Source: Lepidodermella squamata
Taxonomy: Eukaryota; Animalia; Gastrotricha
Assembly: GCA_047495785.1 (NCBI GenBank)
Contig: JBLDXI010000007.1
Span: forward strand, 2,914,001 to 2,978,000
Reading direction: 5' to 3'
Length of the DNA: 64,000 nt
Part shown: positions 14,530-62,860 of the stretch, one piece after another
Layout: each line of letters begins with the position of its first letter
Position numbering within the stretch: the stretch's first letter is position 1
Notes under the pieces: model-generated
Databases searched by the model: none
What the model saw: only the letters and a program-made list of their open reading frames with translations
Told to the model about the DNA's origin: nothing
Position numbers and translations under genes: made by a program

Positions 14530-15726
14530 ATGGCTGATATAATATCTGACACGGCAATATCCGCAACGATTTCACTGTGGCTGAAAGCCGGCCATTCGAC
14601 CGCGGAGCTTCACGCGATTCTCGAGCGATTCGCGAAACAAGGCGAGGCGGCTAAAATCGCAACGATCCTGGAATCAACGTACCAAATTCTCGACCTGGAA
14701 GTTGGATTATCTGTCCTGCGAAATTTCCGCTATAATGAGCACAATTTTCCGGATATCGTGAGAATCATCCAAAACGGCTGGCTGCCGGTCGATTACCCGA
14801 CCGGTCGCCGCGGCACCTCGCCGTTAATTCACATCCTGAATACCATAACTGACTATGACTACGGAGCGGGATTCAAATTTAAGATGGCTGCGTTGTTGAT
14901 CAAAAATGGAGCTAATTTGCTGGCACAAGGTCGTCTCTACGGCACCTTTTTCCGACGCGACGAATCGGACGACGTGGCAGCGTACGTCAATAAGAGTTAC
15001 GGTTGTAGTTTCCCAATTTATTACCCGATTCATTTCCTGGCGAAATTTTGGGAGTTCGGCTACGATTTAGCTAGCCTCATGATTTCATCCACACCGCCCG
15101 AGTGTTTATTGATCGATTTCGAAAAAGGATCGATTTTCTCACCGCTCTGGTTTGCATTTCAAGAACTTTCAACATTTCGCTACCAGCAATTCAGCAAGCA
15201 GAGTCCGCAAGGCCGAATTCGACTCGGCGAGAATGTTGCCTATGCAAAAATGGTCCAATGCGTTATTTTGCCTCTGTTGCGAGCCGGCTGTACCTTTTAC
15301 CCCGACCCGTTAATCGACATTATTATCGCGAATTTTTTCTCCTTTTTCCCGTTTTCGAAGCAAATTTGCGCTCGTATTTGGGATCGCGAGTCGATTTGCC
15401 TTGAGTTGTTGATTGAAGCGAGGCGGAAATCTGGCTTAACTGCTGTTGCCAAAATCACCGAAAACGTTCCCGCGTTTAATAAGGGATGCAACGACGGTTT
15501 TGTGGCGGACATCCGCGCCATGTACCCTCTGCGGCTTCAAAACATCGCGAGGATGGCTATTTTGGCCCAGCTACCTATCGGCCTGACGCAGCGGCAAGAA
15601 TCGATTCGGGAACTGGGTCTGCCGGATGATTTGACGAGCTTTTTGAATTTCGATGAATTCAACGTTCCCACACAGCGGCTGGTGAGGATGACCTGCAGAG
15701 ATGTGGATAACTTTATTTTCCGCTGA
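14530..15726 (+). CDS. SOCS-box protein, subfamily A (A1), with degenerate ankyrin-like repeats (ASB-like)
   Basis: C-terminal PLRLQNIARMAILAQLP...IRELGLPDDLTSFLNF is a BC-box plus Cul5-box. SPLIH..ALLIKNGANL is ankyrin-like. Confidence 0.85.
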   Translation: MADIISDTAISATISLWLKAGHSTAELHAILERFAKQGEAAKIATILESTYQILDLEVGLSVLRNFRYNEHNFPDIVRIIQNGWLPVDYPTGRRGTSPLIHILNTITDYDYGAGFKFKMAALLIKNGANLLAQGRLYGTFFRRDESDDVAAYVNKSYGCSFPIYYPIHFLAKFWEFGYDLASLMISSTPPECLLIDFEKGSIFSPLWFAFQELSTFRYQQFSKQSPQGRIRLGENVAYAKMVQCVILPLLRAGCTFYPDPLIDIIIANFFSFFPFSKQICARIWDRESICLELLIEARRKSGLTAVAKITENVPAFNKGCNDGFVADIRAMYPLRLQNIARMAILAQLPIGLTQRQESIRELGLPDDLTSFLNFDEFNVPTQRLVRMTCRDVDNFIFR

Positions 15727-17291
15727 AATCAATGGGAGCTTCGACATTGTCGACGAGGACATTTTCATCGTGGTTTATTCTATCTGCTTTATCTGTGCTT
15801 TATTTAGCTTTGTTCTGCTTTATTCTATCTTCTTTTAGCATTATTTTTTTTTAACAAAAAATGGTGAATAGATAATAAAAATATTGCGGCGGCGTTTGTT
15901 GTTTATGTAACATCAATATCACTAGCCTTCATTTTACTTGATTAATAAAACGCTTTTTAAGCCATTTTTAGACGGAATTTATTCGATTTTGCGTTTTGCG
16001 ATAGATGTTGTGCGGTCAGTTCACTGCTAAATTTTGGACTCGAAGAACAACAACCAAAATAGCTTCCAGCGGAGCCAAATTTGTATTTTGCTGAACCGAT
16101 GTCGAAATATGCGAAGATTCTTTTTGTGAATAATTTTACGAGCGAACTTGTAGGGAATGTTAAGCTGAATTTACTGGTGGTTATTTTTGAATTCTTGTTG
16201 TCAATGCTGACCCGCAAGAAATATCCGAAAGGTGATTTCAGGCCACTAGAAAATTCTGAAATTTTGTTCCGCTAAAAGGACGACCCATTTACAACCAGTC
16301 AGAACTTGGTGGAAAGTTGATCATTCAGGGTGGGTAATTTTGAAGTCGTTTCCCGTTTCCAAAAATTTTCAAATTTTCCAAGTTCCAAGCTTCGCAATTT
16401 TAGAGGAACAAATTTTCTATCGAAAATTTTGATTTTGGGTTTTAAAGCGTAATTTGATTTTTTTAATATCCCGAATACTACTGAGAATTACGAAGTTTTC
16501 TAGTACTATTTGCGACCGAGCAAACAGACTCGCTCCAATCGCCCCGTCGTCGACCGGAACATCGAAGACTCACAATTAAAATTTATATTGAAATTTTATG
16601 AAATAGACGTTCGACCCGGCCAACAAATTTTCGCCCGATATTCTAAACGTTAAAATTAGTGAGTTTCACATCAAATTATCATACTAGATAAAATCTTCTA
16701 TTGCATAAATTATAACTACCTGATATCTAGTTGAATAAGTTTAGCAACATTTTGAGCCCATTTGGCCCCTTGAAAGTTGCACTGTGCTGGCGGCCACGGG
16801 CCGCTAACTTATATGATAATATATTATGACATTTTTATTACATTTATTTATTTTACATTTTTTATGACATTTTTGTGACATTTACGGCCGCATGCATACG
16901 TATTAATAATTGTAAATTCTTAGCTTGAACTCGATTATAAAATTTGTATGAAGGTCCTTTTGATTATTGAGCCCCATATTTCGTCGTCAGAAGCATATTC
17001 GGAAGCAATGTTTCAACATAATTTATTGTACTGTCAAATTATTCAATTCAATTTTTGAAGAAATTTATTTGAATTATTTGAATTTTATTTATTTTATTTA
17101 TTTGAATTATGAAGAAATTTATTGCGACTCGACCCGAATTTTATTTGATCCCCTTCGCAATTTGAAAAAAAATCCGATATTATTTGCATCAAGAGCTGTA
17201 AAACAGCTTTAATCAGACGAAATATTCCATTTCCATCGCAAAACGAAATCATGGGATCTATGTGGTTTTGTTTAGATTTTCCTTTATTTTA

Positions 17292-18482
17292 ATGTCTGTC
17301 ATTTCTGACACGACAATATCCGCAGCGATTTCCGCATCGCTGAAAGCCGGCCATTCGACCGCGGAACTTCACGCGATTCTCGAGCAATACGCGAAGCAAG
17401 GCGAAGCGGCTAAAATCGCAACGATCCTGGAATTAACGTACCAAATTCTCGACCTGGAAGTTGGATTATCTGTCCTGCGAAATTTCCGCTATAATGAGCA
17501 CAATTTTCCGGATATCGTGAGAATCATCCGGAATGGCTGGCTACCGGTCGATTATCCGACCAATCGCTGCGGTATCTCACCGTTACTCCACATGCTGAAC
17601 TCCATCGCTGAAGTTGATCATGGAACGGGCATCAAATTTAAGGTGGCTGCGTTGCTGATCAAAAATGGAGCTAATTTGCTGGCAGAAGTTTCACTCCCCT
17701 CCGCCATGTTTCTACCTGACGAAGTGAGAAAAATGAAGCCGTACGTCCAGGATTGGTTGACGCTGGACCGTTCAATCTATTATCCGATTCATTTCCTGCC
17801 AAAGTATTGGGAATTCGGCCACGATATAGCTAGCCTCATGGTTTCATTCACCCCAACCGAGTGTTTTCTGGTCGATTTCAATAAGGGAATCATTTTCTCC
17901 CCGCTCTGGTTTGCATTTCTAGAATTTGCGAAATTTCGCTTCAAGCAATTCAGCCACCTGAGTCCGAGAGGTCGTGTTCGACTCGGCGAGAATGTTGCCT
18001 ATGCTAAAATGGTGCAATATGGCTTTGTACCTCTGTTACGAGCTGGCTGCCCTTTGCACCCCGACCCGCTAGTCGACGTGATGATGGTGGATATGTTGAT
18101 GTTTTTGCCGGTTGCTAAGGAAATCTGCGCTCGTGTTTGGGATCGGCAGTCAATTTTTCTCGAGTTGCTGATTATAGCCAGGCGCAAATCTGGCGTCAGC
18201 GTTGCCGAAATTCCTGTGAATATACACGCAAGTCTTACGAGATATCGCGACTGTTTTGTGGCAGACATCCGCGCCATGTACCCTCTGCGTCTTCAAAACA
18301 TCGCGAGGATGGCGGTTTTGGACCAGCTACCGATCGGCCTGACGCAGCGGCAAGAATCGATTCGAAGACTAGATCTTCCGGATAGTTTGACGAGCTTTTT
18401 GAATTTCGATGAATTCAACGTTCCCACGCAACGGCTGGTGAGAATGACCCGCAGAGATGTCGACAACTTTATCTTCCGCTGA
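17292..18482 (+). CDS. SOCS-box protein A2
   Basis: Paralog of A1. The ATG at 17292 aligns with the A1 start. Confidence 0.85.
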   Translation: MSVISDTTISAAISASLKAGHSTAELHAILEQYAKQGEAAKIATILELTYQILDLEVGLSVLRNFRYNEHNFPDIVRIIRNGWLPVDYPTNRCGISPLLHMLNSIAEVDHGTGIKFKVAALLIKNGANLLAEVSLPSAMFLPDEVRKMKPYVQDWLTLDRSIYYPIHFLPKYWEFGHDIASLMVSFTPTECFLVDFNKGIIFSPLWFAFLEFAKFRFKQFSHLSPRGRVRLGENVAYAKMVQYGFVPLLRAGCPLHPDPLVDVMMVDMLMFLPVAKEICARVWDRQSIFLELLIIARRKSGVSVAEIPVNIHASLTRYRDCFVADIRAMYPLRLQNIARMAVLDQLPIGLTQRQESIRRLDLPDSLTSFLNFDEFNVPTQRLVRMTRRDVDNFIFR

Positions 18483-21747: not shown

Positions 21748-22935
21748 ATGGCTGATGTATCTGACACGGCAATATCCGCAGCGATTTCCGCGTCGCTAAA
21801 ATCCGGCCATTCGACCGCGGAGCTTCACGCGATTCTCGAGCGATGCGCAAAGCAAGGCGAGACGGCTACAATTTTGAAAATCCTTGAGTCAACTTACCTA
21901 ATTCTCGACCTGGAAGCTGGCATCTCTGTACTGCGAAATTTTCGCTACACCGAACAAACTTACCCGGCACTCGTGAGAATCATCCAAAATTTCTGGCTGC
22001 CGCTCGATTATCCGACCAATCGCGGCGGCATCTCACCGTTAATTCACATTCTAAACTCTATCACTGACGGCGACAATGGAACGGGAATCAAATGCAAGGT
22101 CATGGCGTTACTGATCAAAAATGGAGCTAATTTGCTGGCTCAAGGTCGTCTCCCCGTCGACTGGTTTCGACGTGATGATTTGGAGAAAGTTGTCGCGTAC
22201 GTCAAGAGTTGTAGTGGCAGTCTCCCAATGTATTACCCGATTCATTTTCTGGCGAAATGTTGGGATTTTGGTCAGGATTTAGCTAGCCTCATGGTTTCAT
22301 ACAGCCCGCCCGAGTGTTTTATGGTCGATTTCGAAAAAGGATCGATTTTCTCCCCGCTCTGGTTTGCATTTCAAGAGCTTTCAACTTTTCGCTACCAGCG
22401 ATTCAGCGAGCAGAGTCCACTAGGCCGAATTCGACTCGGCGAGAATGTTGCCTATGCAAAAATGGTCCAATGCGTTATTTTGCCTCTGCTGCGAGCCGGT
22501 TGTACCTTTCACCCTGATCCGTTGCACGATGTGATTATGACGGATTTTTTCTCATTCTTCTCGTTTTCGAAGCAAATTTGCGCTCGTATTTGGGATCGCG
22601 AGTCGATTTGCCTTGAGCTGTTGATTGAAGCCAGGCGAAAAACTAGCTTAAGCGTTGCCAAAATCACCGAAAACATGCCCGTGTTTTTTAAGAAAAGCAG
22701 CGGCTGTTTTGTGGCAGAAATCAGCGCCATGTACCCTCTGCGTCTTCAAAACATCGCGAGGATGGCTGTTTTGGACCAGCTACCGATCGGCCTGACGCAG
22801 CGGCAAGAATCGATTCGAAGACTGGATCTTCCGGATAGTTTGACGAGCTTTTTGAATTTCGATGAATTCAACGTTCCCACGCAACGTCTGGTGAGGATGA
22901 CCCGCAGAGATGTCGATAACTTCATCTTCCGCTGA
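21748..22935 (+). CDS. SOCS-box protein A3
   Basis: Paralog of A1/A2. ATG at 21748; intact ORF with a SOCS box. Confidence 0.85.
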   Translation: MADVSDTAISAAISASLKSGHSTAELHAILERCAKQGETATILKILESTYLILDLEAGISVLRNFRYTEQTYPALVRIIQNFWLPLDYPTNRGGISPLIHILNSITDGDNGTGIKCKVMALLIKNGANLLAQGRLPVDWFRRDDLEKVVAYVKSCSGSLPMYYPIHFLAKCWDFGQDLASLMVSYSPPECFMVDFEKGSIFSPLWFAFQELSTFRYQRFSEQSPLGRIRLGENVAYAKMVQCVILPLLRAGCTFHPDPLHDVIMTDFFSFFSFSKQICARIWDRESICLELLIEARRKTSLSVAKITENMPVFFKKSSGCFVAEISAMYPLRLQNIARMAVLDQLPIGLTQRQESIRRLDLPDSLTSFLNFDEFNVPTQRLVRMTRRDVDNFIFR

Positions 22936-26004: not shown

Positions 26005-29000
26005 ATGGAATTGAACGATTTTGGCATCTGCTGCCTTGAAGGCCGGTTCTCCAGCCATTGCCCGATCAACAGTGCCCAGTACAAGTCAGCCCTGACGGAA
26101 TGCGCCTTGATGCTGCTCGAGATGGCTAAACAGGTCTGCGAACCAGACGCCATCCAGCTGTTGTCTACCCACCCGACCGAGAAATTTTGCGCCGCCGTGC
26201 TGCCGCTCCGGTTTAATTCGCAATTCTACCTGCGAAATAACCGGGAGATCGGCTATCAAGCGATGAGATCGGCGAATTCCATTATCCTTCGCCTGATCTC
26301 ATCGCTTGATAGTCGCGAATTGGGATATTTCGAGCAAATCGCCGATGACTTGGGTGCTTTGATTTCCCCGCTCGATCTAATCAAGCTGCACCTGGCTGTC
26401 GACCTTCGCGAGCTGGGCATTTTCGAACGTCTTATGGACGTATTATTCATCCCATCGTGTGTCATATCCATCCTTGTCGAGACGTTTTTCGTCTGTTCGA
26501 GCCGCGATACAGCGATGACGCCGGCTGCGACTCGCATCTTGGAGCGATTGGCGGCTCAGTGGTCGGTTGGCCAGAAGTGGATGGAGTCGTTTTGGGATCT
26601 GTATAGTATTGCTTATTGGTGTAAGTTTCCATCCTACATTTTTTATTAGAATTTTAAATTATATTTTCTGAGATTTATTTTTTGTGAAATTTGTGAGATT
26701 TTCAATCTGGCTAATATTCGAAGCCTTTTAAATTTTTTAAATTTATAAAAATCGCCGATAGGCGAATAAAAAAATATACCAATCTTCAAAATGAGATGTG
26801 AATTCGTATCTAATGGCGAAAAAAATCGTAGAAAATGTCTTTGACATCGTTATAATATTAATATATCATTTCCATAGAGATCTCTATGATCATTTCTCTT
26901 TGGGATTAAAATAAGGGTCCTCCATTTAGCTGAACCAAATTTGAATTTTTGGAACTTCAGTCGAATTATGCCAAGGGCCACTCTTTTAATGATTTTTCGT
27001 CTATGATTATGAATCGTCTAGCAGGTAATGTTGATTTTTTTTAGAATTATTGAGGTCAATCTTGATACCCAAGTCAATCCGAAAAGTTATTTCAGGCCAC
27101 TAGAAAAAAGATATTCCAGATAATTTATTTTCCAAACGGTCGAAATGCCAATAATAAGCGGAATGAGTTACCATATCGGGGGTCCCGGGTTTCCTTCGGT
27201 AACTTATTAATTTCTTCTTTGAAATTGAGTCTACATGAGGTTCACGCTAAGGGTTCAAATTCGGAAAAGTAGTGGAAAAACCGGGCATCACGATTTTCCA
27301 TATTCTAGGTAAATCCTGGTCTTTAATCACTCAAGTTGAATAATTTTAATATTTGTACATATTAGTAAACAAAAATATTATTTAAAATTGAATGAGAGAG
27401 AAGGAATTTTCTGGTTTTTAGTTTTGTCCCCGGGCAATTTTCAATTTTTTTAATTTAAAATTGAGCGGCGGATAGAACTGAAAAAATCAGAAAATTCACC
27501 TAACCCAACTTTTCACTCGTTGAGGGTCATAGGAATTTGGGTGTGACTTTTTTCATCAGACATAGGTCTTCTTTTATCAGACAAATGTCTTATTTCATCC
27601 GACATCCTAAAACGTGACTTCAATTATTCGACAACAGTTCTCACTCGGAACCAAGTTTCACTGAATTTTTAGGAAATTAGGGAACTTCAAGAAAGACTTG
27701 GTGACCACGGATATCTAGCGATTCCGAAGTCGATATTGATTTGGTCAAAGGGTTATTTGGTTTAGGAATATTTTTGAGATGAAAAAGTCCTTTCGAAGCC
27801 AGGATTTCGAACAGTTTTGAACCCTTTTTTACGTCAAAGGACATCATTTTGAAGTGCCGATTCCGTCAACTCATGGGTTCCTCTAGATATTTCTGGTTTT
27901 GAAATCGATTGGAGCCACGGATCGCATATAAAGAACTGAGTTTTTAGGTTCCTGAGCTTGGCTATTGGGCAGAGATGCTCGGCAAAGTTTGAATTTAGGC
28001 GAATTTCTTGTCGGTTATTTCAAGTCACTTTTAGGATGTCGGATGAAGTAGGACATATGTCTGATGAAAAAAGTTTTTCTCAAGAATTTTTATTGGGTCG
28101 ATATATTTGCACCACTAAAAATGAGGTTCCAACACTAAATTTAAGCGCCCTGGCACTAAATTCTTCGATTCCTTGCAATTCCGGCGTTTTCGTTTATTGA
28201 TCGATATTGGTGCCCTCCCTGAACCTGGGATTTTTATTTTAACTACCTGGCGCCCTAAGCTACGTTGACTAATTATCGATGTTGGGTTCAAAGCCGGCTG
28301 ATATCGTGAAAATCACTGATTTGTTAAATCGATACTAGGAATCGATATCGGCTCTACAGGCTGAAATATAACTCATAAATTGACCGCTCTTAGCGCGAAA
28401 TACGCGAAATATGAGGGTCTATCGGTTAGGCATCATAACAAAAATTTGTAGATTCCAATGAGGACCAGAAACTTGAAAAACCATATTTATGGGGAAAATA
28501 GTGCTGGAGTCTCAAACCAAACCCTAAATTTAGGACGCGCACTTGGCACCCCCATTTTTATTATTTCAATCTTTCAAGTGTTACTAAATCGATTTTTTAT
28601 TGATTTTTTTGCAGCTGAGTTTGGCAGATTGATTGAGAATTTCGACGGAAAGGCATTTACAGCCGACGAAAAAGCTGTTGATGTTCCAAATCGCAGTAGA
28701 ATCGTCGACATCCTCATCCACAAGCTGTGCTGTTTTTCTCCAGCTAAAATATTCCCGTTCAGGGAAATGCTGTGTAGTCTGGTCAAAGTCGCTGACCGTG
28801 TTCCAGATTTCGGAATGAAGCTGTGCAGCCTATACTTAGCGGCCTCGAAGCAGCAAGGCCTCACATGGCTCGATGTTATGGAGAATTTATTTCTGCGATC
28901 AAGTACATATCAGTTGTCATTGAGCGAGTCGGTCCCCAAACTACTGTTTGCCTTGCTTAATTTAACCCGGGCTGGTGTGACCTTCAAACGTTATTTCCAA

Positions 29001-29390
29001 TGGCGCCCAGATTTTTGCGATCGCATCTTCGAGCTCATGATTGACGGCCGATTTCCCGGCGAGAAGGAAGCGCGCCTTTTATTCACGTTTTGCCTGCTCT
29101 ATTTCCGCGATTTACGCGGCTTTGACGTGCCACGGTTAGCCGCGACCTTGGACCGAGTTTGGGCGAACAATCGTAGGCCGGATGCGACAACTCGAGAGCC
29201 GGTGAAGCAGCAGATCAAATCTGTAATCTCGACGACTTACCCGTTTTCGCTCATGGGCTTTGCGAGGAAGGCGATTCTGTCTCGGCTGCCAGTTGGCTGG
29301 GAGAAGCGACCGGCAGCTATTCGCCGTCTGCCGCTCCCGGAAAGAGAGAAAAGATTCCTAAACTTCGACGACATCGCCGCGCTCGTCTAG
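26005..29390 (+). CDS. SOCS-box protein, subfamily C (C1); exons 26005..26620 and 28615..29390 (463 aa)
   Basis: Phase-1 donor T|GTAAGT and acceptor TTTTTTTGCAG join in frame, and the exon 2 start aligns without gaps to C2. It ends YPFSLMGFARKAILSRLP...IRRLPLPEREKRFLNF. Confidence 0.8.
27546..28074. mobile_element. Foldback/MITE in the C1 intron
   Basis: Imperfect inverted arms of about 80 bp (TTCATCCGACATCCTAAAA / TTTTAGGATGTCGGATGAA). TSD not resolved. Confidence 0.6.
28290..28550. repeat. Dispersed repeat (other copies at about 35150-35380 and 50620-50730)
   Basis: Shared core ATCGATATCGxCTCTxxAGG...GACCG...TCTATCGGTT. Confidence 0.6.
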
Positions 29391-30396: not shown

Positions 30397-31650
30397 ATGG
30401 CCGGAATTTCAGATCATTTGATATCTAGTGCAATCGAAAATTCGCTAAGGGCCGGCAGTCCAACCCAAGAACTCGAGGCTATTCTCCAAAGATTTGCAGC
30501 ACGTGGCGATGCTGATAAAATCATCAAAATTCTACAGTCAGTCCACCAAATTCTCGACCTGGAAACCGGCATCTCAATTCTACGCGATTTCAACTTTGAA
30601 GACGAAAACTTACCTGTGATGGAGAAAATCCTGCGCAATAAATGGCTGCCATTGCATTACCCGCGAGATTACGCTGAAACCGATTTTGGGGCGATGAGTC
30701 ACATCCCGCCCATGTTTCACCTGCTGAAATTTTTACCGTTTTTCGACGAAGACGACGTGCCAGCTAAAATCAAGGCGGTTGAGCTGATGATCGAAAACGG
30801 CTTTGACATGCTATCCCGAGCTTACCCAACCTTCGAATCGGCGGAATTTGGCGAAATACAAAAATTAACCACGTATTGGGCGGATGAAAAAGCCAAGAAA
30901 AGGCTGCCCCGACTTTACGCCATCCATTTCCTGCCGAATTGCGCTGAATTTAGCTATGATCTTGGCAATTTACTGGTTTCAGCCACCCCGCCGGAAGGGC
31001 TGGTAACCAGCCGTGGAAATCGGGTGTTTTTCACCCCGCTCTGGTCGGCTTTTCGAGAATTTTCGTCGTACTGGAAAAAAAGATTCTGCGTTCAATTTCC
31101 TGAAGCTCGAATTCGACTCGGCGAGAATGTTGCCTATGCAAAAATGGTGCAATGTGTCATTTTACCGTTGCTACGAGCTGGTTGCACCCTGAACCCGGAC
31201 CCGTTATTCGATAATTCCGACAAGAAATTCAGCGTTGATTTTGCGAAATTTCTGCCGGTCGCTGAAAAAATTTGCGCTCGAGTTTGGGGCCGCGAGTCGA
31301 TTTTTCTCGAGTTGCTCGTCGAGGCGAGGCGTAAACCCGGCTGTAATGTCCCAAAACTGTACGGAATTTCCAGAAACACGGGTAAAAATCAGGAAAAATC
31401 CATGCGGGCGAAATGCCATGGCTTTGCGGTTGAACTGAGCGATTTCTACCCGCTTCGGCTTCAAAATCTCGCCAGAATGGCTGTTTTGAAAAAGCTGCCA
31501 ATCGGGTTGAAACAGCGACAAGAATCGATCGAAAACCTGGGTCTACCAAAAAATGTGGCGAGCTTTTTAAATTTTGACGAATTCAACGTTCCGGACCAAA
31601 GTTTGCTGAAAATGAGCCGTGAAGATGTGAATGATGTCAAATTTCGCTGA
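30397..31650 (+). CDS. SOCS-box protein A4 (divergent subfamily A member)
   Basis: Colinear with A1-A3 and ends YPLRLQNLARMAVLKKLP...LGLPKNVASFLNF. Probable 5'UTR intron at 30228(GTAAGT)..30382(TTTTAG). Confidence 0.85.
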   Translation: MAGISDHLISSAIENSLRAGSPTQELEAILQRFAARGDADKIIKILQSVHQILDLETGISILRDFNFEDENLPVMEKILRNKWLPLHYPRDYAETDFGAMSHIPPMFHLLKFLPFFDEDDVPAKIKAVELMIENGFDMLSRAYPTFESAEFGEIQKLTTYWADEKAKKRLPRLYAIHFLPNCAEFSYDLGNLLVSATPPEGLVTSRGNRVFFTPLWSAFREFSSYWKKRFCVQFPEARIRLGENVAYAKMVQCVILPLLRAGCTLNPDPLFDNSDKKFSVDFAKFLPVAEKICARVWGRESIFLELLVEARRKPGCNVPKLYGISRNTGKNQEKSMRAKCHGFAVELSDFYPLRLQNLARMAVLKKLPIGLKQRQESIENLGLPKNVASFLNFDEFNVPDQSLLKMSREDVNDVKFR

Positions 31651-31838
31651 AAAAAAACAATTTCAAAAATTATCTGATTTTTTCTACAAATTGCTCAACA
31701 AATTATGCTTGTTTGATTTTTCAATTTTTTTTTCTTAAAGTTTGTCCATATATTGAATGCCATTTTATATTTCAGCCATCATAAATAAATAAAATACAAC
31801 AATAAAATTCGTTTATTTTTAGTATTTTTGAAATTGAG

Positions 31839-43750: not shown

Positions 43751-43786
43751 AAATTAAATTATAACAATTAACTAGAGCAGTTTTAA

Positions 43787-48200: not shown

Positions 48201-49553
48201 TTGCAAGCTCAAAACCTATAAAGGACATTTTGAGCAATTTAAAAAAATCTTAAAATCACGAAAAAATAACCATCTCGTTCCTCTCAAAATTCTCTTTCGG
48301 GTTCTATCAACAAACTTGAGAGAACCAGCTCTGATTTAACGAAATCGATCGAATGAAAATCCACTTCTTTGTTTACTCTCCCACCGAAATTCGGACATCT
48401 TTTCATGATTCAGCTGAACATCTGCGACCCATGGTGTTCCGCTCTTTTCTCGTGAGTAGTCAGTCTATCTTAAATTATGTCTATGGTAGGCAGTCTATCC
48501 TAAATTATGTCTATGGCATTAGCCAATTCTGTTTTCGATCGCCAAAAATATAAGATAAAAATCGATAAATCGGGGCTCAACTTACACACCTTTGCACCAA
48601 AAACCATCGATTCCTGGAAAAGAACTGATTTTTAATTTTAATCATCGAAAAACATGGTTTTGTCCAAAATTTCCCGCGCTTTTGCTGTATTGTTATATTT
48701 TATGGAGCGGGCAATTTTTCCTAATAATTCATTCAATTTTTCAGGAGCTTTCTTTGCGATTGTTCGGAGTTTCAATTCACTCAGATACCAGTATCAGTCG
48801 GTGAAATTGTTGACAAAAAGTCGCCTGTTATCGTTAATGATACCGAAAGTGCCTCCAACGTCGCTGCTAAATTTCAATGGAAAACGGGATTTTGTCGATA
48901 ATTTGAGCATGCTATTACCTGCGATTTGCAAACATCCTGTGATTATGGAGAAAATGTGCGATGCATTTCAACACTCAACGCGCCGACCGACTTTCAGCTG
49001 GGCTGAGTTCTTCATTCACAGACATGAATATAGCGCTGCCAATGAAACTTTGGCTAGAGAATACTTCAGTCTTACTTTAAAATATATCATTCTACCACTT
49101 TTACGGTCTGGCTTCACGGCTAGTGAATATCAGGACCCATGGTTCTGTATGATTAATTTTAGCATCATTTGGGAACTACTTGGAAATGGGTCTGAATTGC
49201 AGCACAAATTCCTGTCGGCTGTCCTTCAATGCATCAGCGAAAGAACGTTTGACGGTTGGTCTAGCACGATGGAAGCACTTAGGCCCTGGGGTCGAGGAAG
49301 ATCCCAGGCTGAAATCGATCAAACGAATAAGGCACTTGAAAATTTAAGGCGGCGATATTTTTTTTCTCTTCAACATTCAGCTCGTTCCGCAATATTGAGG
49401 CAACTACCCTGGGGCATGAGCAGGCGCAAATCGGGTATTGATAGCCTGCCTCTTCCGAACTGTCTCGCGAATTATCTTCAATTTGATCATCTCGATTTTG
49501 CTGTTGATATTTCGAATATGAATATGAACGCAATTTGGTTTAGTGATAATTAG
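45237..49553 (+). CDS. SOCS-box protein B6; exons 45237..45804 and 48745..49553 (458 aa)
   Basis: Conserved phase-1 intron; in frame; SLQHSARSAILRQLP...LPLPNCLANYLQF. Confidence 0.85.
46809..47530 (-). mobile_element. hAT (Buster/Charlie-type) internal-deletion derivative with a transposase remnant
   Basis: 16-bp TIR CAGGGGTTCTCAAACT and an 8-bp TSD TCCTAAGA with central TA. Minus-strand LNTALQGKNNTLIDL..FRLKL..FP and HPALRDVFAKLSTYFG resemble the C-terminal half of a Buster/GTF2IRD2-type transposase. Confidence 0.9.
47730..48303. mobile_element. Long-TIR MITE in the B6 intron
   Basis: Imperfect inverted arms of about 110 bp (GATGGTTATTTTTTCGT / ACGAAAAAATAACCATC); absent from the B4 intron. 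Confidence 0.65.
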
Positions 49554-51218
49554 AATGAATATATTGATTGCATGTCTTCATGTTTTCTTTTCAGGTAATT
49601 AACACACTTCTATATACAGGTGCGTGAATAAACTGTGTAATTAGCTCGTCGAGAGCGCGCTCAAGTGGGTGTGTGCGCACCCTGTTCACCTGTGTTCACA
49701 TTGCGTGACGCGCATTCGCGTGTGCGCATATATCCACTTCACACCCACTCCGCCCTAATTTTCAATTGTTGCTGTTGATGTTTTGTTGTCATTGCTATTT
49801 GCTCAGAGAATAAAAACTACTTTTATTTCTTATTGTTCAAGTTTTATGAAGTCACCGATTTTTAAGGTGGTCGCGCTGTTTTTCCCCGGTCAGTCATCAT
49901 ATCGCATCGGAATTGCCATTTATTAGCCGAATATTCACTTACCACTAACACTCGTTATATTTATTTTCAATTTTTTCCACTTTTTCATTGGTTCAACTTG
50001 CAGAAAATACCGCAGTAGCCGTCCGCGTTAAACCTGTTTTTTTTACAGGAAAACACAATTTAAGCATATGATTTGTCTCCCTTTTATGTCAGAAAACTGG
50101 CTCTTTAAAATGCGGGTTATTTCGCCGAGTTCGAAACCAATATTTCTAGGTTTCATGAGCCGGTTGTCCGCCTTGAATTCAACGCCTGTTTTCCATATTT
50201 TTCCTCAGTTCTTATTTTCGTTCGATGATTTTTGAAAATTGAACCCCAACGGTCTCCATTATTCCGGCGCTAAAATTGATTTTTTTTCGATTCTTTGAAA
50301 TTTTCTGGATTCTTTTCCTGATCTCCATTGATGCTGCCCCCTAGCCAACATAGGATTTGGTTATTTTCGCTACCTAGTACGATCACCCAGTTAGGGTTAG
50401 GATTGGTTAGGTAGGTAGTTTAGGCACACAGTAAAAAAAAGTTCGCTATTTAGCACTTGGCATTTAGCACAGCCGGTTATTTAGCATAAAAATTGAAACA
50501 ATTTCTTTTATACAATTTTTATAATTTTTACCTATAATTTGCTATTTATCGCCTCGAATTTCATTTTTTGGTAATTAGAAGCTTCAATTTTTCGACTAAA
50601 TAGGAGGCGAAATCGATAATAGAAATCGATATCGGCTCTGTATAGGTAGAGGTACATAGAAGTTCATAAACAGACCGCCGATGGCGCAAATTAAGCGTAA
50701 CCGTTAAATCTATCGGTTTTGAAGTATGATGACGAAATTGAGATTGTGCAGCACCCCATTTTTTGTCTGGAAAAAGCTTAGGTTGCCGAATCGATATGCC
50801 GAATAATATATAATTTCTCTCATTTTATGCTTTTTAAGCCCCATTTTTCTGGTATTATTTCGTATTTTTTGAAAGATTTATGCTCTAAACTCTAGTAAAA
50901 AACTAGTCGCATTAGCTTGATACTTCAGGATAACCTCAAGTCGTGCAACCAGAGATCAAAATTTTGATTTTTGCTTAAATTAAAATCTTTTGAAAATTCA
51001 AAAACATTTTCATACAATTTTAAAATTTAATTTTTTTAATTTGTTTTTTTTCGTGAAATTGTTGCTCAAAATATTTCCAAATTTACAACCTTGGCAGACA
51101 TACCTTCGCCCTTCGGCAAAACTGTTTTGAAGCCTTTATCGACTCGCGTCTCAATTCTTAATCCTCAATAATGAATTTTTTATGAATTAGGTATAGATAT
51201 TTTGAATTCGAAACTGAA

Positions 51219-53013
51219 ATGGAGCTGAATTGTTCACCCGAAATGTTCTGCGTTGCTTTGAGAAAAACGGCTGAAATGCTTGTATTGAGGGCGAGAATAA
51301 CAGCCGTTGAACATGAAGTGGTCAGCATGTTGTCACTCACTGCAGCCGAGAACTATGCCGTATGCCTTGTACCTCTGCGCTTCAGCGGAAAATTCTACAT
51401 AAAGCATAGCATGTATGTTGGGCCCCTGTCTAAGGTTACGATAAATCAATTCATGCTCGACTACATTGCTACACTGAACGACGAAGAGCTAGCGGAGCTG
51501 AACCGAATCGGCGAAAATCTTGGCCGAGTGCCGATTTCTCCTCTCGGCCTCATCACACTTCATCTCGCCGTCGATCAGCGTGATTTCTCGTATTTTCTGC
51601 ACGTGGTCGAGGCGGAACATGGCGAGACAGAACTGCCGCGCTGCGTCCTTGCCGTCCTTGCTGAGACGTTTTTCATGTCGACTAAGAGAGATGAGCCGTT
51701 CACCAAGTCTGCCGTCGATATCCTCGAGTATTTGGCCGCAAGGTGGAGAATTGGTGGCAAGTGGCTGGCGCCGATCATTACGGAGCATCCTTTTTACTCG
51801 CGTGAGTTATATAAATTAGAAATCAGTGTAATTGGAATTTTTATGTTTTTTCCGTGTTATCAAAAAAGTTTCTCTGCAATTTTGTTAATCTAATCCTGAT
51901 TTTGATACTTGGAAAAATTCTCTTTCCAAATAAATTCTCCTGTTTTTCGAAATTTGGTCGATAAAAAGTGAAAACTCACAAAGCGTCAAAAATCATCCAA
52001 ATTTAAAAATCGTAAATGTTTTCGATCGCCAAAAATCAGGGGAAAATGTTAGAATCATCAAAACTTAAAAATAAATTGGCAATCACCTTGCACGCCTTAG
52101 TAACCTTAGTCACCCCAGTTGACGGTTTGTGACTTCATATTGATTTAAAAAATCCCAATAAATTTGGTCCAAAAGCGGGTAACATTACCGAGCATCGGGT
52201 TTTCTGCGGTAAAATCGCAGATAAAGCATGGAAATTGCTTCAAAAGATTATTAAATTATTTTGAAATTTTTTCCAGATCTACTTCGCTGTTTGTTCGCCG
52301 ATTTTGACCGCCATAAATTCAGCGATGAAAGCGCAGCCATCGACCGCCCGAACCGCTCGAAAATCGTCGATATCCTGATCGACAAATTCAGCCATCTGCC
52401 AGCCGACATCTTCCCCTTCGACCTGATAATAGGGCAGATGGCCGTATGTCGTGCTAACATCCCGGATTATGAGACCAAATTGTGCCGCCTGTATGCCATC
52501 GCCTCGAATTCTGCCAACTGGAACTGGCCGCAGCTCTTTTTCGAGTATTATTGGAAAGGCCCGAAATATTTGCGAGTCATACTCGAAATCGCCCTGGTCC
52601 TATTGAAAGCCGGCTTTACTTTCCCTCTCACATCCACTCTGCAAGCATTCTGGGCCAAGAACCTAACCGAGGCCTTTAGCAACCGATTCGCCAATGACGC
52701 CGAATGGCAGTTGTTTGCCAAGATTTTTCTGCTCTTCTTCAACAACTTGGATTTTGACCTGAACAGCGTCACGATAGAACCTGTCCTCTACTGTCAAATT
52801 ACTCTTAAGGAACGTTTGTTGGCTAGTTGCGGGGCGGTGTACCCGTTCTCGCTTCAAGATTGCGCCCGCCGAAGCGTCGCCCGTTGCCTGCCGGTTGGCC
52901 TCATTGAGCACAAGCTGGCTATCAACAGTTTACCGCTGCCGGGCCGATTTCGCGACTTCCTCAACTATGAAGATCTCGAGGCTGCTCTCAAAAACATCTT
53001 GATCAGAAATTGA
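51219..53013 (+). CDS. SOCS-box protein C2; exons 51219..51801 and 52277..53013 (439 aa)
   Basis: Phase-1 C|GTGAGT..TTTTTTCCAG joins in frame. It ends YPFSLQDCARRSVARCLP...INSLPLPGRFRDFLNY. Confidence 0.8.
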
Positions 53014-56068: not shown

Positions 56069-59000
56069 ATGTTACGATGCTTGCCGCGGAAAAAATCAGA
56101 AATCACTCAACATATCAAAGTGGATGATCACGACTCTTCTATTTGCCGTTCCGTGAAAATCTCTGGAAAATGTGCGATTGTTACGCCCGAGTTTAGTACT
56201 TTGATGGCTAAACAATTAATCTGGCTAGCTAATTCCAGGCACGCCGGCCTCAAAAACATGAAACTGGCCTCGGCGACTGATCACCGCGATTATATCAGGC
56301 TAGTACCAGAAAATCTTTTCGAGGGCTGTTTTTTGGTCTCAACTCTACCGCAAAGCAAGAGGCGGAATCTGCCAATGACTGCCAAAGGTATTATTCAAGC
56401 TATTACGAATCGAAATTCTTCATCGCATGATGATCGAGTCAAATTTGAACCCCTCGACGCTGTCTTGCTCTTTGTCGCTCTTTGTTCCGATGATTTGGCG
56501 ATTTTTCGACGAGTTTACACGGCTAAACTACCAGTGATTCCACCGTGTTTCGCCTCTACTTTGTTAAACAGAGCGTTAAACTATTTCTATGATGACAGCT
56601 GCTCAACGGCGCTTTTTTTAGTCGAAAACGGGGCGGAGTTGAATGATAAAGATGTCGACGGTAAGTGACGATTTCTTTTCACTGAAATTAAACGAGGGAA
56701 TGTATTAGATACCAATCGTATTTTTCCAAAAATAATGATCTGAATTTCATTTTGCGATGATCAAATATTTTTGACACTCCTGAAAGGTCTCTAAAGTCAG
56801 AGAAAAATGAAACACCCTGCGATGTATTCTAGCTTGGCATCTCTGAATATGCCGCAAAGAATATTTCATTTCATTTTCTGCAATTGAAAAGCCGGTGATT
56901 TCGTGTTTTTCGAAGTTTGGCAGGCGACTGGTAAAAGTTGTGAGGTCGATTTTCGAATGCGTAGCTGTGCAATATTATGCCAAATAGTGTCCAAAATTAT
57001 CCGCCAATTTTCTGGAAAACGACCAAAAAATCCAAGATCGATAGAAAAATTGGGAAATTATTCAAGTTTGCTGCAAAATTGTAAAATTCTCTTGTTTCAT
57101 AATTTCTAAACCTAATTTGTAACCTGCGAAAATCTTAGCTTCGCGCTGTAAGCCACTCCAAACTTCAGTGGATTTCAATTCCGTCTGACCAATTCCTTAT
57201 TTTGACAATTTTGTTAGATGAATCTCACCTGAATTTGGGCGACCCAGTTAATTTTCTCTTGATATAAGGAGGATAGAGGCGTTTCTGATGTCTGTAACCC
57301 AAAGAAACTTGAATTCGAATTTTATCTTCAGAATTCAGAATTGACTAGGAAATTGTAAAAAATAAACCAAACATCACTTTTAACAGCCTACCGACATTAT
57401 CTTCCCGAAATTTTCACAAACAGGACATGTTTGCCCCCCGACTTTGTCCCAACGTCAATTTATTCCCAATTTATATTTCCGATTTGACATTGCCTATTCG
57501 ACATTAGCGCAATTAATTTTATAATTTTTCGTTTAATTACTAACGACATTTAGACTATTGATTCCCGACACTTTCGCCTTGAAAAAAATGTTGCCTTGGG
57601 AATAACAGGTGCATGGTTGTATTTATTGTCGAGAATACTATTCAGCGTTCACATAGCATGAGTGAATCCAAAGTTGAATAAATTAGATGTTTTAGTCGTC
57701 GGCGGTTGTTTCGCTGCTAGCTATCGCCCGCTGGATATAGCTGGATATATAGGATAGGTCGTTGCCCACAACACCTGGTTCCACGCCCACACCTGGTAGA
57801 AGACCTGGTAGAATTGCGGCATCTGTTAAGATTACTAACAGTACTTTTAGCTAGAATAATCCCAAAAACCACGGCCCCAAAAACCCCACGGTCACTTATA
57901 ACAGCTTATCAGGTTATTAGCCCGGGCGTTTTTAGAAAATATTTGGCAAAAGCAGAATAAAAGAGGAGTTCTTAGGGTATCGAATGCCGCTTTCCGCAAC
58001 TCCGGACGATTTTACTTCGATTCATGGCTAATTTTTTAGTCACCCAGACACCCGGCCGGAATTAGGGAACGGTGTGTCCTAATTTCGGCCACCTCATCCA
58101 GGTGCGCTTATACCACTAATTTGGTATCGTTAGATTTGTCTCAAAAAGCTGACTTAAAAACCGCCTTTGTTGCTTCACCTGTGAGCTTTTCCTTGACGAC
58201 GTGTTGCCTGAAACTCAAACTTGTTTTGACAGGTACAAGTTTGATAACTTGTTTTCTACCTAATAGCCTAACTGCGGTTGACTTTCTAAAATTCTGGAAA
58301 AATATCTAAAAATCCCTTGCCTCCTGCAGAGTATCGATTTTGTTTTCCCGAATTCAACTCCACTATTGACTGCTAATTTTTGGAATCGAACCCTCGAAAA
58401 CCCTAAAATTGGCCCTCTCGATCTCTTCACCTGGGCGGTTTTAGATAGAATTTTTTATCAGCTTCGCTGGTAAAAATTGAGATGAAAGCAGTAAACTTTA
58501 AAGAGCCAATTTCAGGTATATTATACCTGCTAAGTAGCGGTAACGGAGCACTCGAGAAGCGAAATGAGCCCGCTCGCTCGCATTTAGAATTATTTTTTTG
58601 CGATCACGTGCTTGAAAAATCATGAAACAGATGGGCTCAACAATGCAATTTTCTTGAATTGCGTGAATATAAAACTGCTGCACAGCACTTCGTGTCCAAA
58701 TTTCGGCCGGTGGCCGAAGTTAGGGCGCAGCAGCCGAATTTAGGAAGTGGCCGAAATTAGGGCTCCCTCCTCTACTTAATGCCGATGAATATGCAAATGA
58801 ACGTGTTGTCCAACATTAGCCAATCTGTTTTCGATCGCCATGAATCAGGTAAAAATCGAAAAATCGGGGCTCACCTTACACACCTTTTGCACCAAAAACC
58901 ATCGATTCCTGGGAAAGAACTGAAGATTTTTCATTTTAATCATCGAAAAACATGGTTGTGTCCAAAATCTCCGGCCCTTCGGCAAAATCTCCGGCAAAAT

Positions 59001-59882
59001 CTCCCTGTATTTTTTTATGTTATGAAGCGGACACTTTTTCCTCATGATTCATTCAATTTTTCAGGAGCGTTTTTTGCGATTGTTCGGAGTTTCAATTCAC
59101 TCAGATACCAGTATCAGTCGGTGAAATTGTTGACAAAAAGTCGCCTGTTATCGTTAATGATACCGAAAGTGCCTCCAGCGTGGCTGCTAAATTTCAATGG
59201 AAAACGGGACTTTGTCGATAATTTGAGCATGCTATTACCTGCGATTTGCAACCATCCTGTGATTATGGAGAAAATTTGCGATGCATTTCAACACTCAACG
59301 AGCCGACCGACTTTCAGCTGGGCTGACTTCTTCATTGGCCGCGCAATATTTGCGTCTGTCAATGAAACTCTGGCTAGAGAATACGTCAGTCTAACTTTAA
59401 AATATATCATTCTACCACTTTTACGGTCTGGCTTCACGGCTGGCGAAAATCTTTACTCGTCTCACAACCCAGAGATCTGCATGGTTACTTTTCGCGGCAT
59501 TTGGGAACTACTTAAAAATGAGTCTGAATTGCAGCACAAATTCCTGGCGGCTGTCCTTCAATGCGTCAGCGAAAGAACGTTTGACAGTTGGTCAAGCCGG
59601 ATGGAAGCACTTACGCTATGTCGAGGAAGATCCCAGGCTGAATTCGATCAAATGAAGAAGGCAGTTGAAAATTTAAGGCGGCGATACTTTTTTTGTCTTC
59701 AAAATTCAGCTCGCTCCACAATATTGAGGCAACTACCCTGGGGCATGAGCAGGCGCAAATCGGCTATTGACAGCCTGCCTATTCCGAAATGTCTCGCGAA
59801 TTATCTTCAATTTGATGATCTCGATTTTGCTGTGGATTTTTCGAGTATGAATATGAACGCCATATGGTTTAGTGATAATTAG
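56069..59882 (+). CDS. SOCS-box protein B7; exons 56069..56660 and 59065..59882
   Basis: The family ATG is GTG at 56120, and there is an in-frame upstream ATG at 56069. Splice sites are intact and the SOCS box has LPIP. Confidence 0.75.
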
Positions 59883-60393
59883 AATGAATATATTTATTGC
59901 ATGTCTTTATTCTTTATGTTTTCTTTTCAGTTAATTAACACTTGAATACAGGTGCGTGAATAAACGGTGTAATTAGCTCGTCGAGAGCGCGCTGAAGTGG
60001 ATGTGTGCGCACCCTGTTACCTGGGTTCCCATTGCGTGACGCGCATTCGTGTGCGCGCATATATCCACTTCACACCCACTCCGCCCTAATTTTCAATTGT
60101 CGCTGTTGATGTTTTGTTGTCATTGCTATTTGCTCAGAGAATAAAGACTACTTTTATTTCTTATTGTTCAAGTATTATGAAGTCACGCTGTTTTTCCCCG
60201 GTCAGTCATCATATCGAATCGAATTGCCATTTATTTGCCATTTATTAGCCGACACTCGTTCCATAATTTTTCAATTTTTCGACTTTTTCATTGGTTCAAC
60301 TTGCCGAAAATGCCGCAGTAGCTGTCCGCATTGAGCCTGTTTTTTTTACAGGAAAACTCAAATTGAGCATATGATTTGTCTCTCTTTTATGTC

Positions 60394-62107
60394 TCCGTCA
60401 GTTAGTTCTCCGTCAGTCAGCGTATGATTGCCGATGCTGTGTCACGCCTCAAGCCGTTCAAGGCTCCCGGGTTGGATGGTATCAGCCCCGTCTTCTACAA
60501 GTGGGGTGGACCGGTGCTGCAGCGCCACCTCCGGCACATGTTCAACCTGAGCCTCGGATCGCGCTTCGTACTGCCCGACTGGAAGGAAGCTGCTGTGATA
60601 CCCGTGCCGAAAGCTGGCAAGCCGTTGGAGTCCATCGTGGCGCGTTGGTTGGGCGAGTTTTTGGAGAGCCACCACGCCCTGCCCGACAACCAGTATGCGT
60701 TCCGCGCGCACCACTCTGCACCCGATGTCCCTTTACGCGTCGCCCACGCCGTTCACCTTGACCGTTCTCGACACCGAAAAGTGATCGCTGTTGGCCTGGA
60801 CGTCCAGGCGGCTTACGATTCCGTGTGGAGTGCTGGCCTAGCGTTCAAGCTTGCTAAACTGCCGCTTCCTCGAAACCTCGTTTGGTGGCTGACCGATTTC
60901 CTTCGCGATCGCAACTTGCAGGCTCGTGTTGCGGGCTTCCTTAGTCGACAAGTTACCGTCAACTGCGGCGTGCCGCAAGGCTCGCCGCTGTCACCGCTGC
61001 TCTATATCGTTTACACTTCCGATCTGATGACCGCGCCGGCTGCCCCGGGGTGTTATCTCGATGCCTATGCTGATGACCTAACTGTTGTCGGTGAAGGGGT
61101 GGATTTTCCTGACGCTGAGCGTGCTACCCAGGATGAGATCGACCGGATATCAGCGTGGGCCCACGAGTGGCGGCAAAGGTTTAATGCCTCCAAGAGTGAA
61201 GTGATGCCATTCGCGTGGCACAGCTACGATGCCCGACTAACACTCGATGGCTCGGCGATCCCGCAAGTCCCAGTCATGCGCATCCTTGGTGTCCATCTCG
61301 ATGCTAAGTTGACCTGGAAGGCCCACATGGACCGCGTTATCACCCGCTGCACTCGCAATTTATCGCACTTTCGCAGTGTCTGTCGAGCCCCTGGCCTTTC
61401 TCGCCGGTGGCGCCGAACCGCGTATCTAAGTCTCGTTCGAACCACGTCAACGTATGGTAGCATCGTTTTCTGCACTCCACCCAAGTGGCAACTCAAGCGC
61501 CTTGATGTCCTTCAGAACGATTTCCTTCGGGCTCTACTGAACGTCCGCCGCGATGACCGCGTCAGAGTCACGGGCCTCGAACGTCGCGCTGGTCTCCCGC
61601 GTTTCTTTGAACAGACGCAGCGCCGTTACGCCGACAACGCCGTCCGCTTCGTCCTCCCGATCCGCGAAGCTGTCGAGCAACCACGTCTCTCTGCGAACCC
61701 GGTGCCCCGGTCTCCGCTGGCCCTGATCGCCAGCAGGCTTCCTCGGGGTCCTCTGCCCACCTTCGGTGTGTGATCGTTCCGTGTCTCTTCCGTCTTTCTA
61801 CATCTTGTACGTCTTGTCTTGTATAATCCTGGTTCCTCTTCTCCTTTCTTTTCTTTTTCTTCCTGCTGCACTCCTTCTGTTCTGATGTACCCATTACATG
61901 TAATCTTCTGCATACGATAAATATTCCTTTAGCTCGCCCACTAGCGTCCTCAGCGCACTGCCGCCGGCAAGCGCATGTCGTCTCGCAACCGCGTGCCATC
62001 TCTGTCATTTTGTATATACTGTTCGAAAGAAGGGAATTTATTATGTTATATTGTTCTTTTATTTTTTTGTGACTGATGGACAAATAAATTTGAATTTACA
62101 ATTTAGA
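60394..62107 (+). mobile_element. 5'-truncated non-LTR retrotransposon (LINE)
   Basis: 8-bp TSD TTTATGTC (60386-60393, 62108-62115), with the empty site at about 50083. The 3' end is AATAAATTTGAATTTACAATTTAGA and the body is GC-rich. Confidence 0.93.
60424..61773 (+). CDS. LINE ORF2 remnant: reverse transcriptase domain without the endonuclease
   Basis: Motifs KAPGLDGI, WKEAAVIPVPK, QYAFR, LDVQAAYDSV, GVPQGSPLSPLLY, YADDL and LGVHLD. Confidence 0.92.
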   Translation: MIADAVSRLKPFKAPGLDGISPVFYKWGGPVLQRHLRHMFNLSLGSRFVLPDWKEAAVIPVPKAGKPLESIVARWLGEFLESHHALPDNQYAFRAHHSAPDVPLRVAHAVHLDRSRHRKVIAVGLDVQAAYDSVWSAGLAFKLAKLPLPRNLVWWLTDFLRDRNLQARVAGFLSRQVTVNCGVPQGSPLSPLLYIVYTSDLMTAPAAPGCYLDAYADDLTVVGEGVDFPDAERATQDEIDRISAWAHEWRQRFNASKSEVMPFAWHSYDARLTLDGSAIPQVPVMRILGVHLDAKLTWKAHMDRVITRCTRNLSHFRSVCRAPGLSRRWRRTAYLSLVRTTSTYGSIVFCTPPKWQLKRLDVLQNDFLRALLNVRRDDRVRVTGLERRAGLPRFFEQTQRRYADNAVRFVLPIREAVEQPRLSANPVPRSPLALIASRLPRGPLPTFGV

Positions 62108-62665
62108 TTTATGTCAGAAACCGGCTCTTAAAAGTGCGGGTTATTTCGCCGAGTTCGAAACCAATATTTCTAGGATTCACGCGCCGGTTGTCCGCCTTGA
62201 ATGCAACGCCTATTTTCCATATTTTTCATAATATTTTATAAAAAAATATTTTTCATATTTTCCTCAGTTCTCATTTTCGTTCGATGATTTTTGAACATTG
62301 AACCTCAACGGTCTCCATAATTTCGGCGCTAAAATTGATTTTTTTTGATTCTTTGAAATTTCCTGGATTTTTTTCTTGATGCTGCCCCCTATACTAAAAA
62401 TGTTAATACAATTTCAAATTTAAATTTTTTTAAATTTAATTGTTAATTTAATTGTTATTTTTAATTTGTTAATTGTTAATTGTTAATTCGTTTTTTCCAT
62501 GAAATTGTTGCTCAAAAAATTTCCAAATTTTCAACCTTGGGCAGACACACCTTCGCGCTTCGGCAAAACTGTTTTGAAGCCTTCATCAACTCGCGTCTCA
62601 ATTCTTAATCCTCAACAATGAATTTTTCATGAATTAGGTATAGATATTTTGAATTCGAAACTGAG

Positions 62666-62860
62666 ATGGAGCCGAATTGTTCACCCGAAACGTTCTGCGT
62701 TGCTCTGAGAAAAACGGCTGAAATGCTTGTATTGAGGGCGAGAATAACAGCCACTGAACCTGAAGTGGTCAAAGTGTTGTCACTCACTGCAGCCGAGAAC
62801 TATGCCGTGTGCCTTGTACCACTGCGCTTCAGCGGAAAATTCTACCTAAAGCATAGCATG
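62666..62860 (+). pseudogene. Interrupted copy of C2 exon 1
   Basis: Near-identical to 51219-51413. Homology stops after AAGCATAGCATG and does not resume in the window. Confidence 0.8.

Follow-up and report, generated by a model that had tools for sequence, protein, structure and literature searches.

A 64,000-nucleotide (nt) stretch of the genome of the gastrotrich Lepidodermella squamata (GenBank assembly GCA_047495785.1, contig JBLDXI010000007.1, positions 2,914,001 to 2,978,000 of the forward strand) carries, between positions 14530 and 62860, a 48-kb head-to-tail cluster of 15 loci in three subfamilies, A, B and C, all on the + strand. We refer to the whole 64,000-nt stretch as the window and count positions from its first letter. 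The cluster is a real and uncommon expansion, a co-oriented tandem array of paralogous ASB-like genes. We consider it likely that the products are ASB-like substrate receptors of an ElonginBC–Cul5 ubiquitin ligase, encoded by a tandem array that turns over by birth and death. SOCS boxes recruit ElonginB/C-Cul5-Rbx2 and the domain upstream of the box picks the substrate; vertebrate ASB1-18 are substrate receptors of this kind, pairing ankyrin repeats with a SOCS box in ElonginBC-Cul5-Rbx2 ligases.

Results

A SOCS box shared by all retained C-termini

Eleven of the 15 copies keep a C-terminus, and in each of them Pfam SOCS_box (PF07525) is the top or sole family (E 1.2e-3 to 3.2e-9), which bears out the SOCS box proposed in a preliminary description of this DNA made from its letters. 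Seven of these matches score at or over the Pfam gathering score of 23.5 bits (25.1-37.3 bits). The consensus given in the same description, L-x3-A-R-x2-[IV]-x3-LPxG-x7-[IV]-x2-LxLP/IP-x5-[FY]L, is likewise present in 11 of 11. A six-frame motif scan finds the SOCS-box signature 11 times, always on the + strand, together with one extra Cul5-box remnant at 43661-43699 in the decayed copy B5psi; the scan returned no signature elsewhere in the window or on the – strand.

Both halves of the box can be read against reference patterns, [S/T/P]-L-x3-[C/S/A]-x3-[L/I/V] for the BC box and L-P-phi-P-x2-phi-x2-[Y/F]-[L/I] for the Cul5 box. The BC-box core L-x3-A-x3-[I/V] is found in all 11 copies with its L and A invariant, and the residue before L is S in six, R in A1-A4 and C in B7. 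A canonical Cul5 box (LP[LI]P...[YF]L) is present in B2, B4, B6, B7, C1 and C2. When a profile of the 11 boxes was compared with the PDB, the top chains were ASB8 (E 0.026), SOCS4 and SOCS2, and the ASB8 box carries the L-x3-A-R signature too.

A predicted ankyrin solenoid upstream of the box

Structure prediction indicates that the N-terminal region is a degenerate, irregular ankyrin-repeat solenoid of about 330 residues. An AlphaFold2 (AF2) model of A1, built from a 38-row alignment of subfamily A and its distant relatives, folds as an ankyrin solenoid with a predicted local distance difference test score (pLDDT) of 86.9 and a predicted template modeling score (pTM) of 0.88. The best five Foldseek matches of this model are ASB9 and ASB8. 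In VIA-align, ASB8 (9ogd), ASB9 (3zkj/6v9h) and ASB7 (8y1u) match at Z 12.2-12.7 over residues ~1-377, with 225-269 residues aligned, a root-mean-square deviation of 3.3-4.6 and 12-18% identity. Ankyrin proteins other than ASBs reach Z <=11.1, and their alignments do not extend past about residue 334, short of the SOCS box. The model is called ASB-like because only ASBs align through the SOCS box, Z alone not being decisive for repeat proteins.

The Atlas shape matches are all ankyrin, with an ASB16 cluster giving the best query coverage. A joint profile of subfamily A and its relatives retrieves ankyrin chains at E 1e-25 when run against structures, ASB7 and ASB9 among the matches; the A-only profile, run against PDB sequences, gave chance matches only. 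On the predicted structure, the family appears ASB-like and too divergent to be assigned to any named ASB. The preliminary description had pictured a constant C-terminal module joined to a diversified recognition module. The constant C-terminus and the divergence of the rest stand, and the recognition module is predicted to be an ankyrin solenoid, so that the whole would have the known ASB-type architecture.

Layout of the array and gene models

Mapping by tblastn, with one query per subfamily, places the loci in the order A1, A2, A3, C1, A4, B1, B2, B3psi, B4, B5psi, B6, C2, C3, B7, C2'. Together with the motif scan, this map reproduces exactly the order and common + strand first described for about 15 genes. 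Ten copies are intact (A1-A4, B1, B2, B6, B7, C1 and C2) and five are decayed. In self-BLAST the duplicates are all in direct orientation, as tandem segments, and the paralogs share 75-93% DNA identity, a divergence which shows that the array is real and not an assembly duplication artefact. Base composition in the window is about 40% G+C, the same in the array as in its flanks.

The A genes consist of single exons of 395-417 codons, all intact. A1 (14530-15726) encodes 398 residues and has a SOCS_box score of 22.3 bits; A2 (17292-18482; 396 residues, 25.2 bits) is 72% identical to A1; A3 (21748-22935; 395 residues) has a 3' end near-identical to that of A2; and A4 (30397-31650; 417 residues) is 49% identical to A1. 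A single phase-1 GT..AG intron interrupts each of the six intact B and C genes, whose closed open reading frames (ORFs) span 439-472 codons. C1 (26005-29390; exons 26005-26620 and 28615-29390) has a 1994-nt intron and encodes 463 residues, with a SOCS_box score of 23.0 bits. C2 (51219-53013; exons 51219-51801 and 52277-53013) has a 475-nt intron and encodes 439 residues (25.4 bits).

Within subfamily B the shared intron site holds 51 nt in B1 compared with 2.4-2.9 kb in B2, B6 and B7 (34213-36684, 45805-48744 and 56661-59064). B1 (31839-33308; exons 31839-32439 and 32491-33308) encodes 472 residues, with a SOCS_box score of 22.9 bits. Its intron, 32440-32490, reads GTAATT...TTTTTCAG and holds an in-frame stop; a pseudogene reading of B1 on account of this stop was rejected, since the stop sits inside the 51-nt GT..AG intron. 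B2 (33615-37502; exons 33615-34212 and 36685-37502) has a 2472-nt intron and encodes 471 residues (27.5 bits), and B6 (45237-49553; exons 45237-45804 and 48745-49553) has a 2940-nt intron and encodes 458 residues (37.3 bits). In B7 (56069-59882; exons ending at 56660 and spanning 59065-59882; 2404-nt intron; 29.2 bits), which is also intact, the family Met position is a GTG at 56120, and an in-frame ATG lies upstream at 56069. The long B introns are swollen by interspersed repeats, one of which (35098-35291) reaches a depth of about 46,000 in a DNA sequencing run, X1.

The decayed copies have lost different parts of the gene. B3psi (37690-38386) is B1-like, internally deleted and frameshifted before the SOCS box: tblastn recovers it as pieces in different frames, the B1 N-part (residues ~1-96) fused to the C-part (~146-276), and its ORF (37690-38280) stops early. 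B5psi (43072-43759) is frameshifted and has the same kind of internal deletion, and it shares 80.8% DNA identity with B3psi over 37597-38376. C3 (53936-54584) is an N-terminal exon alone, broken over two frames, and a tblastn search with the C-part found no SOCS exon for it before B7. C2' (62666-62860) is a C2 duplicate cut off after 65 codons, with 89% amino acid identity to C2 residues 1-65; the underlying DNA duplication (51033-51413 and 62480-62860) is 92.9% identical and ends at 62860.

B4 (40513-42780) had at first been listed among the full-length members. That listing holds for the 10 intact genes; in B4, exon 1 shifts frame near 40998-41023, whereas exon 2 (41951-42780) is intact and has a SOCS_box score of 35.1 bits. 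Exon 1 would be back in frame if a GT..AG segment of 26 nt were removed. We regard B4 as a probable pseudogene, unless this segment is spliced out, because even the shortest confirmed intron is about twice as long.

The spacing of the genes is narrow in places. Gaps of 188-307 nt separate some consecutive genes (31650-31839, 33308-33615, 37502-37690 and 42780-43072), and a polypyrimidine tract followed by AG lies within 10-25 nt 5' of most start codons. These tracts may be candidate trans-splice acceptors, and together with the narrow gaps they may point to polycistronic transcription.

Subfamilies and distant relatives

Subfamilies A, B and C align by BLAST beyond the SOCS box, over the C-terminal ~140-250 residues. 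In the profile of subfamily A and its relatives, the first ankyrin-like repeats are matched by the B N-part (E 7e-5) and, weakly, by the C N-part (E 1.7e-3). Judged from these alignments, the three subfamilies are one superfamily.

Relatives outside the window were found with a profile of A1-A4 run exhaustively against 1.84 billion cluster representatives, which retrieved 28 proteins (P0001-P0028; best E 6e-19), nearly all matching through profile positions ~163-380, that is, the C-terminal half and SOCS box. A1 by itself gave no match in a phmmer-type search of 5.8 billion proteins, the word prefilter being too insensitive for the family; the profile version of that search returned only one sequence already aligned and two generic ankyrin proteins. 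An exact-sequence look-up of A1 in protein collections found no record, which indicates that the proteins encoded by this genome are absent from them. The 28 relatives lie on eukaryotic contigs in ENA metagenomes (ERZ23486787, ERZ27332993 and ERZ27333047), singly or in pairs, among housekeeping genes. SOCS_box was matched in 10 of the 10 that were scanned, and an N-terminal Pfam ankyrin match was found in five of the 10 at E<=0.01, with only some over the gathering score.

A maximum-likelihood tree that includes these relatives recovers a B+C clade (99/97) and an A clade (100/100), with long branches and a poorly resolved backbone between the two. Since A and B+C are separated among the relatives, the subfamilies may predate the species, with copy growth within each being local. 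The array had been described as lineage-specific. This holds for growth within subfamilies and does not extend to the family as a whole, which has distant relatives in other, metagenomic eukaryotes.

Probable transcription and splicing of B2

B2 appears to be transcribed and spliced. In run X2, which is flagged only 'RNA?' (transcriptome-like), a contig runs directly from 34212 to 36685; the 2472 nt that it leaves out have GT..AG ends and are precisely the predicted B2 intron. The same joint is absent from DNA run X1, although X1 covers the intron. X2 depth covers both B2 exons and is zero over 35486-36649 within the intron; it is non-zero across the repeat-bearing part of the intron (e.g. 35098-35291). 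The X2 contigs on B2 exon 2 have zero mismatches, which indicates a source in the same organism. Of the sampled words of A4, 40% are also present in X2.

Substitution patterns and gene turnover

With five of 15 copies decayed, the array shows birth-and-death evolution. Pairwise ratios of nonsynonymous to synonymous substitution (dN/dS; Nei-Gojobori, NG86) range from 0.21 to 0.72 overall. In the A family they are 0.28-0.46 over the whole gene, 0.29-0.59 in the N-terminal half and 0.09-0.25 in the SOCS box and tail. B-family ratios are 0.21-0.25 for old pairs and 0.62-0.72 for the young trio B2, B6 and B7, and substitutions between C1 and C2 are saturated. These values fit relaxed purifying selection after duplication, with constraint strongest on the A-family SOCS box. 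The 3' ends of A2 and A3 depart from the rest of those genes: over the SOCS box and tail (18270-18482 and 22723-22935) dN is 0.012 and dS is 0.125, compared with a dS of 0.47 overall. This low 3' dS relative to the whole gene suggests gene conversion.

In sliding windows of 30 codons, A-family ratios come near 1 at 121-165, a low-confidence loop, and at 301-345, the linker before the SOCS box. The B family has a few spots at 1.1-1.65. In both families the few windows that reach 0.9-1.65 do so on small counts. Such peaks are noisy, and the sequences are too few for site models; the pattern is compatible with relaxed constraint and also with positive selection at particular sites.

It is tempting to see in this pattern an innate-immune or surveillance repertoire that diversifies under an arms race, each receptor having pathogen, virus or transposon proteins degraded. 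The tandem birth-and-death organization with its decayed copies would suit such a repertoire, as would a recognition half far more divergent than the SOCS box and the raised ratios of the young B paralogs, both pairwise and in the highest windows. Yet dN/dS is nowhere above 1 gene-wide, the local peaks amount to few substitutions, those of the A family lying in a loop and a linker, and relaxed constraint after duplication gives the same numbers. A full-text search of a limited literature collection also found no precedent. We consider an immune or surveillance role unlikely. A germline repertoire of dozens to hundreds of ASB-like receptors of Cul5-type cullin-RING ligases (CRL5), spread over many arrays, whose ankyrin surfaces would diversify against foreign proteins of viral, microbial or transposon origin and deliver them to the proteasome, is a doubtful prospect as well; it would be the SOCS-box equivalent of the intracellular surveillance proposed for F-box and MATH-BTB families. 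Turnover of ASB-like receptors by birth and death, with constraint relaxed after duplication, is the reading that we prefer. SOCS_box was matched, B2 appears to be expressed and a stable one-to-one pattern of orthologs was not seen, three points on which the preliminary description had let its proposal depend.

Other elements in the window

The genes could instead be cargo of a transposable element, or have been amplified by one, and not duplicated in place. Repeats are indeed interspersed in the array, and an ORF of a long interspersed nuclear element (LINE)-type reverse transcriptase lies outside the family between B7 and C2' (60424-61773, + strand; Pfam RVT_1 E 2.9e-22). Against this, an inverted-repeat scan of the window found no terminal inverted repeats flanking the gene copies, no transposase-like ORF was found in the array, and the duplication units are the contiguous tandem segments described above, diverged to the same degree as the paralogs and with the G+C content of the flanks. 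We judge an origin by transposition to be exceedingly improbable, and duplication in place remains our preferred account of how the array grew. Insertion of a giant-virus or poxvirus-like ANK segment was also considered, and was judged unlikely here given the host-like G+C, the spliceosomal introns and the apparent splicing of B2 in X2.

A block of 55% G+C (60001-62000) in the 40% G+C background carries the LINE reverse transcriptase ORF. Elements resembling miniature inverted-repeat transposable elements, with terminal inverted repeats of 42-58 nt (83-98% complementary), occur in spacers and introns at 39405-40252, 27568-28073 and 47737-48296. The other ORFs of the array that do not belong to the family gave no Pfam match, which indicates that its genes are not interspersed with those of another family. 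An Rfam scan of the window returned no family, and the only tandem repeats detected were two short ones of two copies each.

The region 5' of the array holds a duplicated gene pair (3971-12567), a helical orphan and an ankyrin gene. The orphan (3971-5986) encodes an all-helical protein of 671 residues that has no Pfam match and for which Atlas gives weakly ARM/TPR/UNC45-like repeats. Its ankyrin partner (6941-7555) encodes a protein of about 200 residues that begins with a hydrophobic leader and contains four canonical ankyrin repeats. The second orphan copy (8194-10156) is broken over at least five frames, and the ankyrin copy (11971-12567), 78% identical to the first ankyrin gene, remains intact. 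Near the edge of the window, an ORF at 316-1287 weakly resembles a Cys-loop ligand-gated channel (Neur_chan_LBD E 1e-8, Neur_chan_memb E 2e-4) and runs past the window start.

Discussion

We propose a model where each intact protein would act as a substrate receptor. If the proteins work as ASB and SOCS proteins do, they would bind ElonginC through the BC box ([S/R]-L-Q-x-x-A-R-x-x-[IV]) and recruit Cul5-Rbx2 through the LP[LI]P Cul5 box, leaving the ankyrin surface to present a substrate for ubiquitination. The three subfamilies, A intronless and B and C with one phase-1 intron, would have arisen by repeated local segmental duplication, divergence and decay.

Several observations weigh against this model. 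Pfam ankyrin models are silent, in that no Pfam match was found in the family proteins outside the SOCS box, and hhalign found no alignment between the A family, taken by itself, and a canonical ankyrin protein encoded in the window. The ankyrin assignment is a matter of predicted structure, and the alignment behind that prediction contains relatives with canonical ankyrin repeats; an AF2 model of A1 built from the four A paralogs had a pLDDT of 46 and was unusable beyond residues ~20-130. Four of the 11 SOCS_box matches fall slightly under the gathering score (19.5-23.0 bits). The Cul5 box is without its first proline in A1-A4 (LGLP or LDLP) and in B1 (LQIP), so that cullin choice would be uncertain for subfamily A and B1. 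As to expression, the nature of X2 as RNA is a guess, the evidence is limited to B2, and the A4 word share is a hint.

The altered Cul5 boxes raise the alternative that these proteins bind ElonginB/C without forming an active Cul5 ligase, serving as decoys or inhibitors or working with another cullin, especially in subfamily A. Besides the substitutions for LPxP in A1-A4 and B1, the tail can be read in this direction: all members have a conserved extension of ~8-27 residues past the SOCS box, while in the ASB8 chain the box ends ~4 residues from the C-terminus. However, the B and C copies, B1 excepted, retain a textbook LP[LI]P-x2-L-x2-[YF]L Cul5 box. In the A family itself no part of the protein is better conserved than the SOCS box, as would be expected of a working interface, and the structures matched over the whole length are ASB-EloBC complexes. 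We regard a non-ligase role as very unlikely and favor the model of ASB-like Cul5 receptors.

Comparison with known systems

The proteins of the array resemble vertebrate ASBs in carrying a C-terminal SOCS box after a predicted ankyrin solenoid, in a box profile nearest to ASB8 and in structural matches to ASBs that run the whole length. They differ in that their repeats fall below Pfam Ank detection, in the extra conserved tail and in the degenerate Cul5 box of subfamily A. The genomic setting is different too, being a large tandem array with pseudogenes here and dispersed single genes for ASBs. FEM1 (ankyrin repeats and a Cul2/VHL-type box) and the poxvirus ANK/PRANC proteins (ankyrin repeats and an F-box-like motif) likewise place a short C-terminal cullin-adaptor box after an ankyrin domain. 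FEM1B and FEM1C are among the structural matches (Z 9-9.6), over the ankyrin part only (to ~residue 335). The box of the array, unlike theirs, is a Pfam SOCS_box with an LPxP Cul5 motif and not a VHL box or PRANC.

The closest sequences, the metagenomic relatives, share the C-terminal half, including an LPLLRxG...PDPL repeat, the SOCS box, similar lengths and some adjacent pairs. They differ in an overall identity of ~15-27%, in that some keep Pfam-detectable ankyrin repeats and in forming no 15-copy arrays. A full-text search of a limited literature collection found no description of a SOCS-box or ASB expansion of this type. For such an expansion, in an animal from a sparsely sampled part of the tree, the array provides curated gene models, a fold assignment and a first indication of expression, and the family profile detects members that Pfam ankyrin models miss.

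In a broader context, lineage-specific expansion of cullin-RING substrate receptors is a recurring theme, documented for F-box and BTB adaptors. The F-box and MATH-BTB families of nematodes and plants are birth-and-death expansions of cullin substrate receptors, with positive selection on the recognition domain as a reported hallmark. If the gastrotrich receptors were directed at pathogens, ubiquitin-based intracellular immunity would gain a third class of adaptor; if they are not, the array is still a clear example of rapid CRL5 receptor turnover. Like the F-box and MATH-BTB families, it combines a constant cullin-adaptor motif with a divergent recognition domain in tandem, co-oriented clusters that contain pseudogenes. 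The adaptor differs, a SOCS box for CRL5 here compared with an F-box for CRL1 or a BTB domain for CRL3 there, and any sign of positive selection on the recognition domain is here confined to noisy windows, with pairwise dN/dS of 0.21-0.72.

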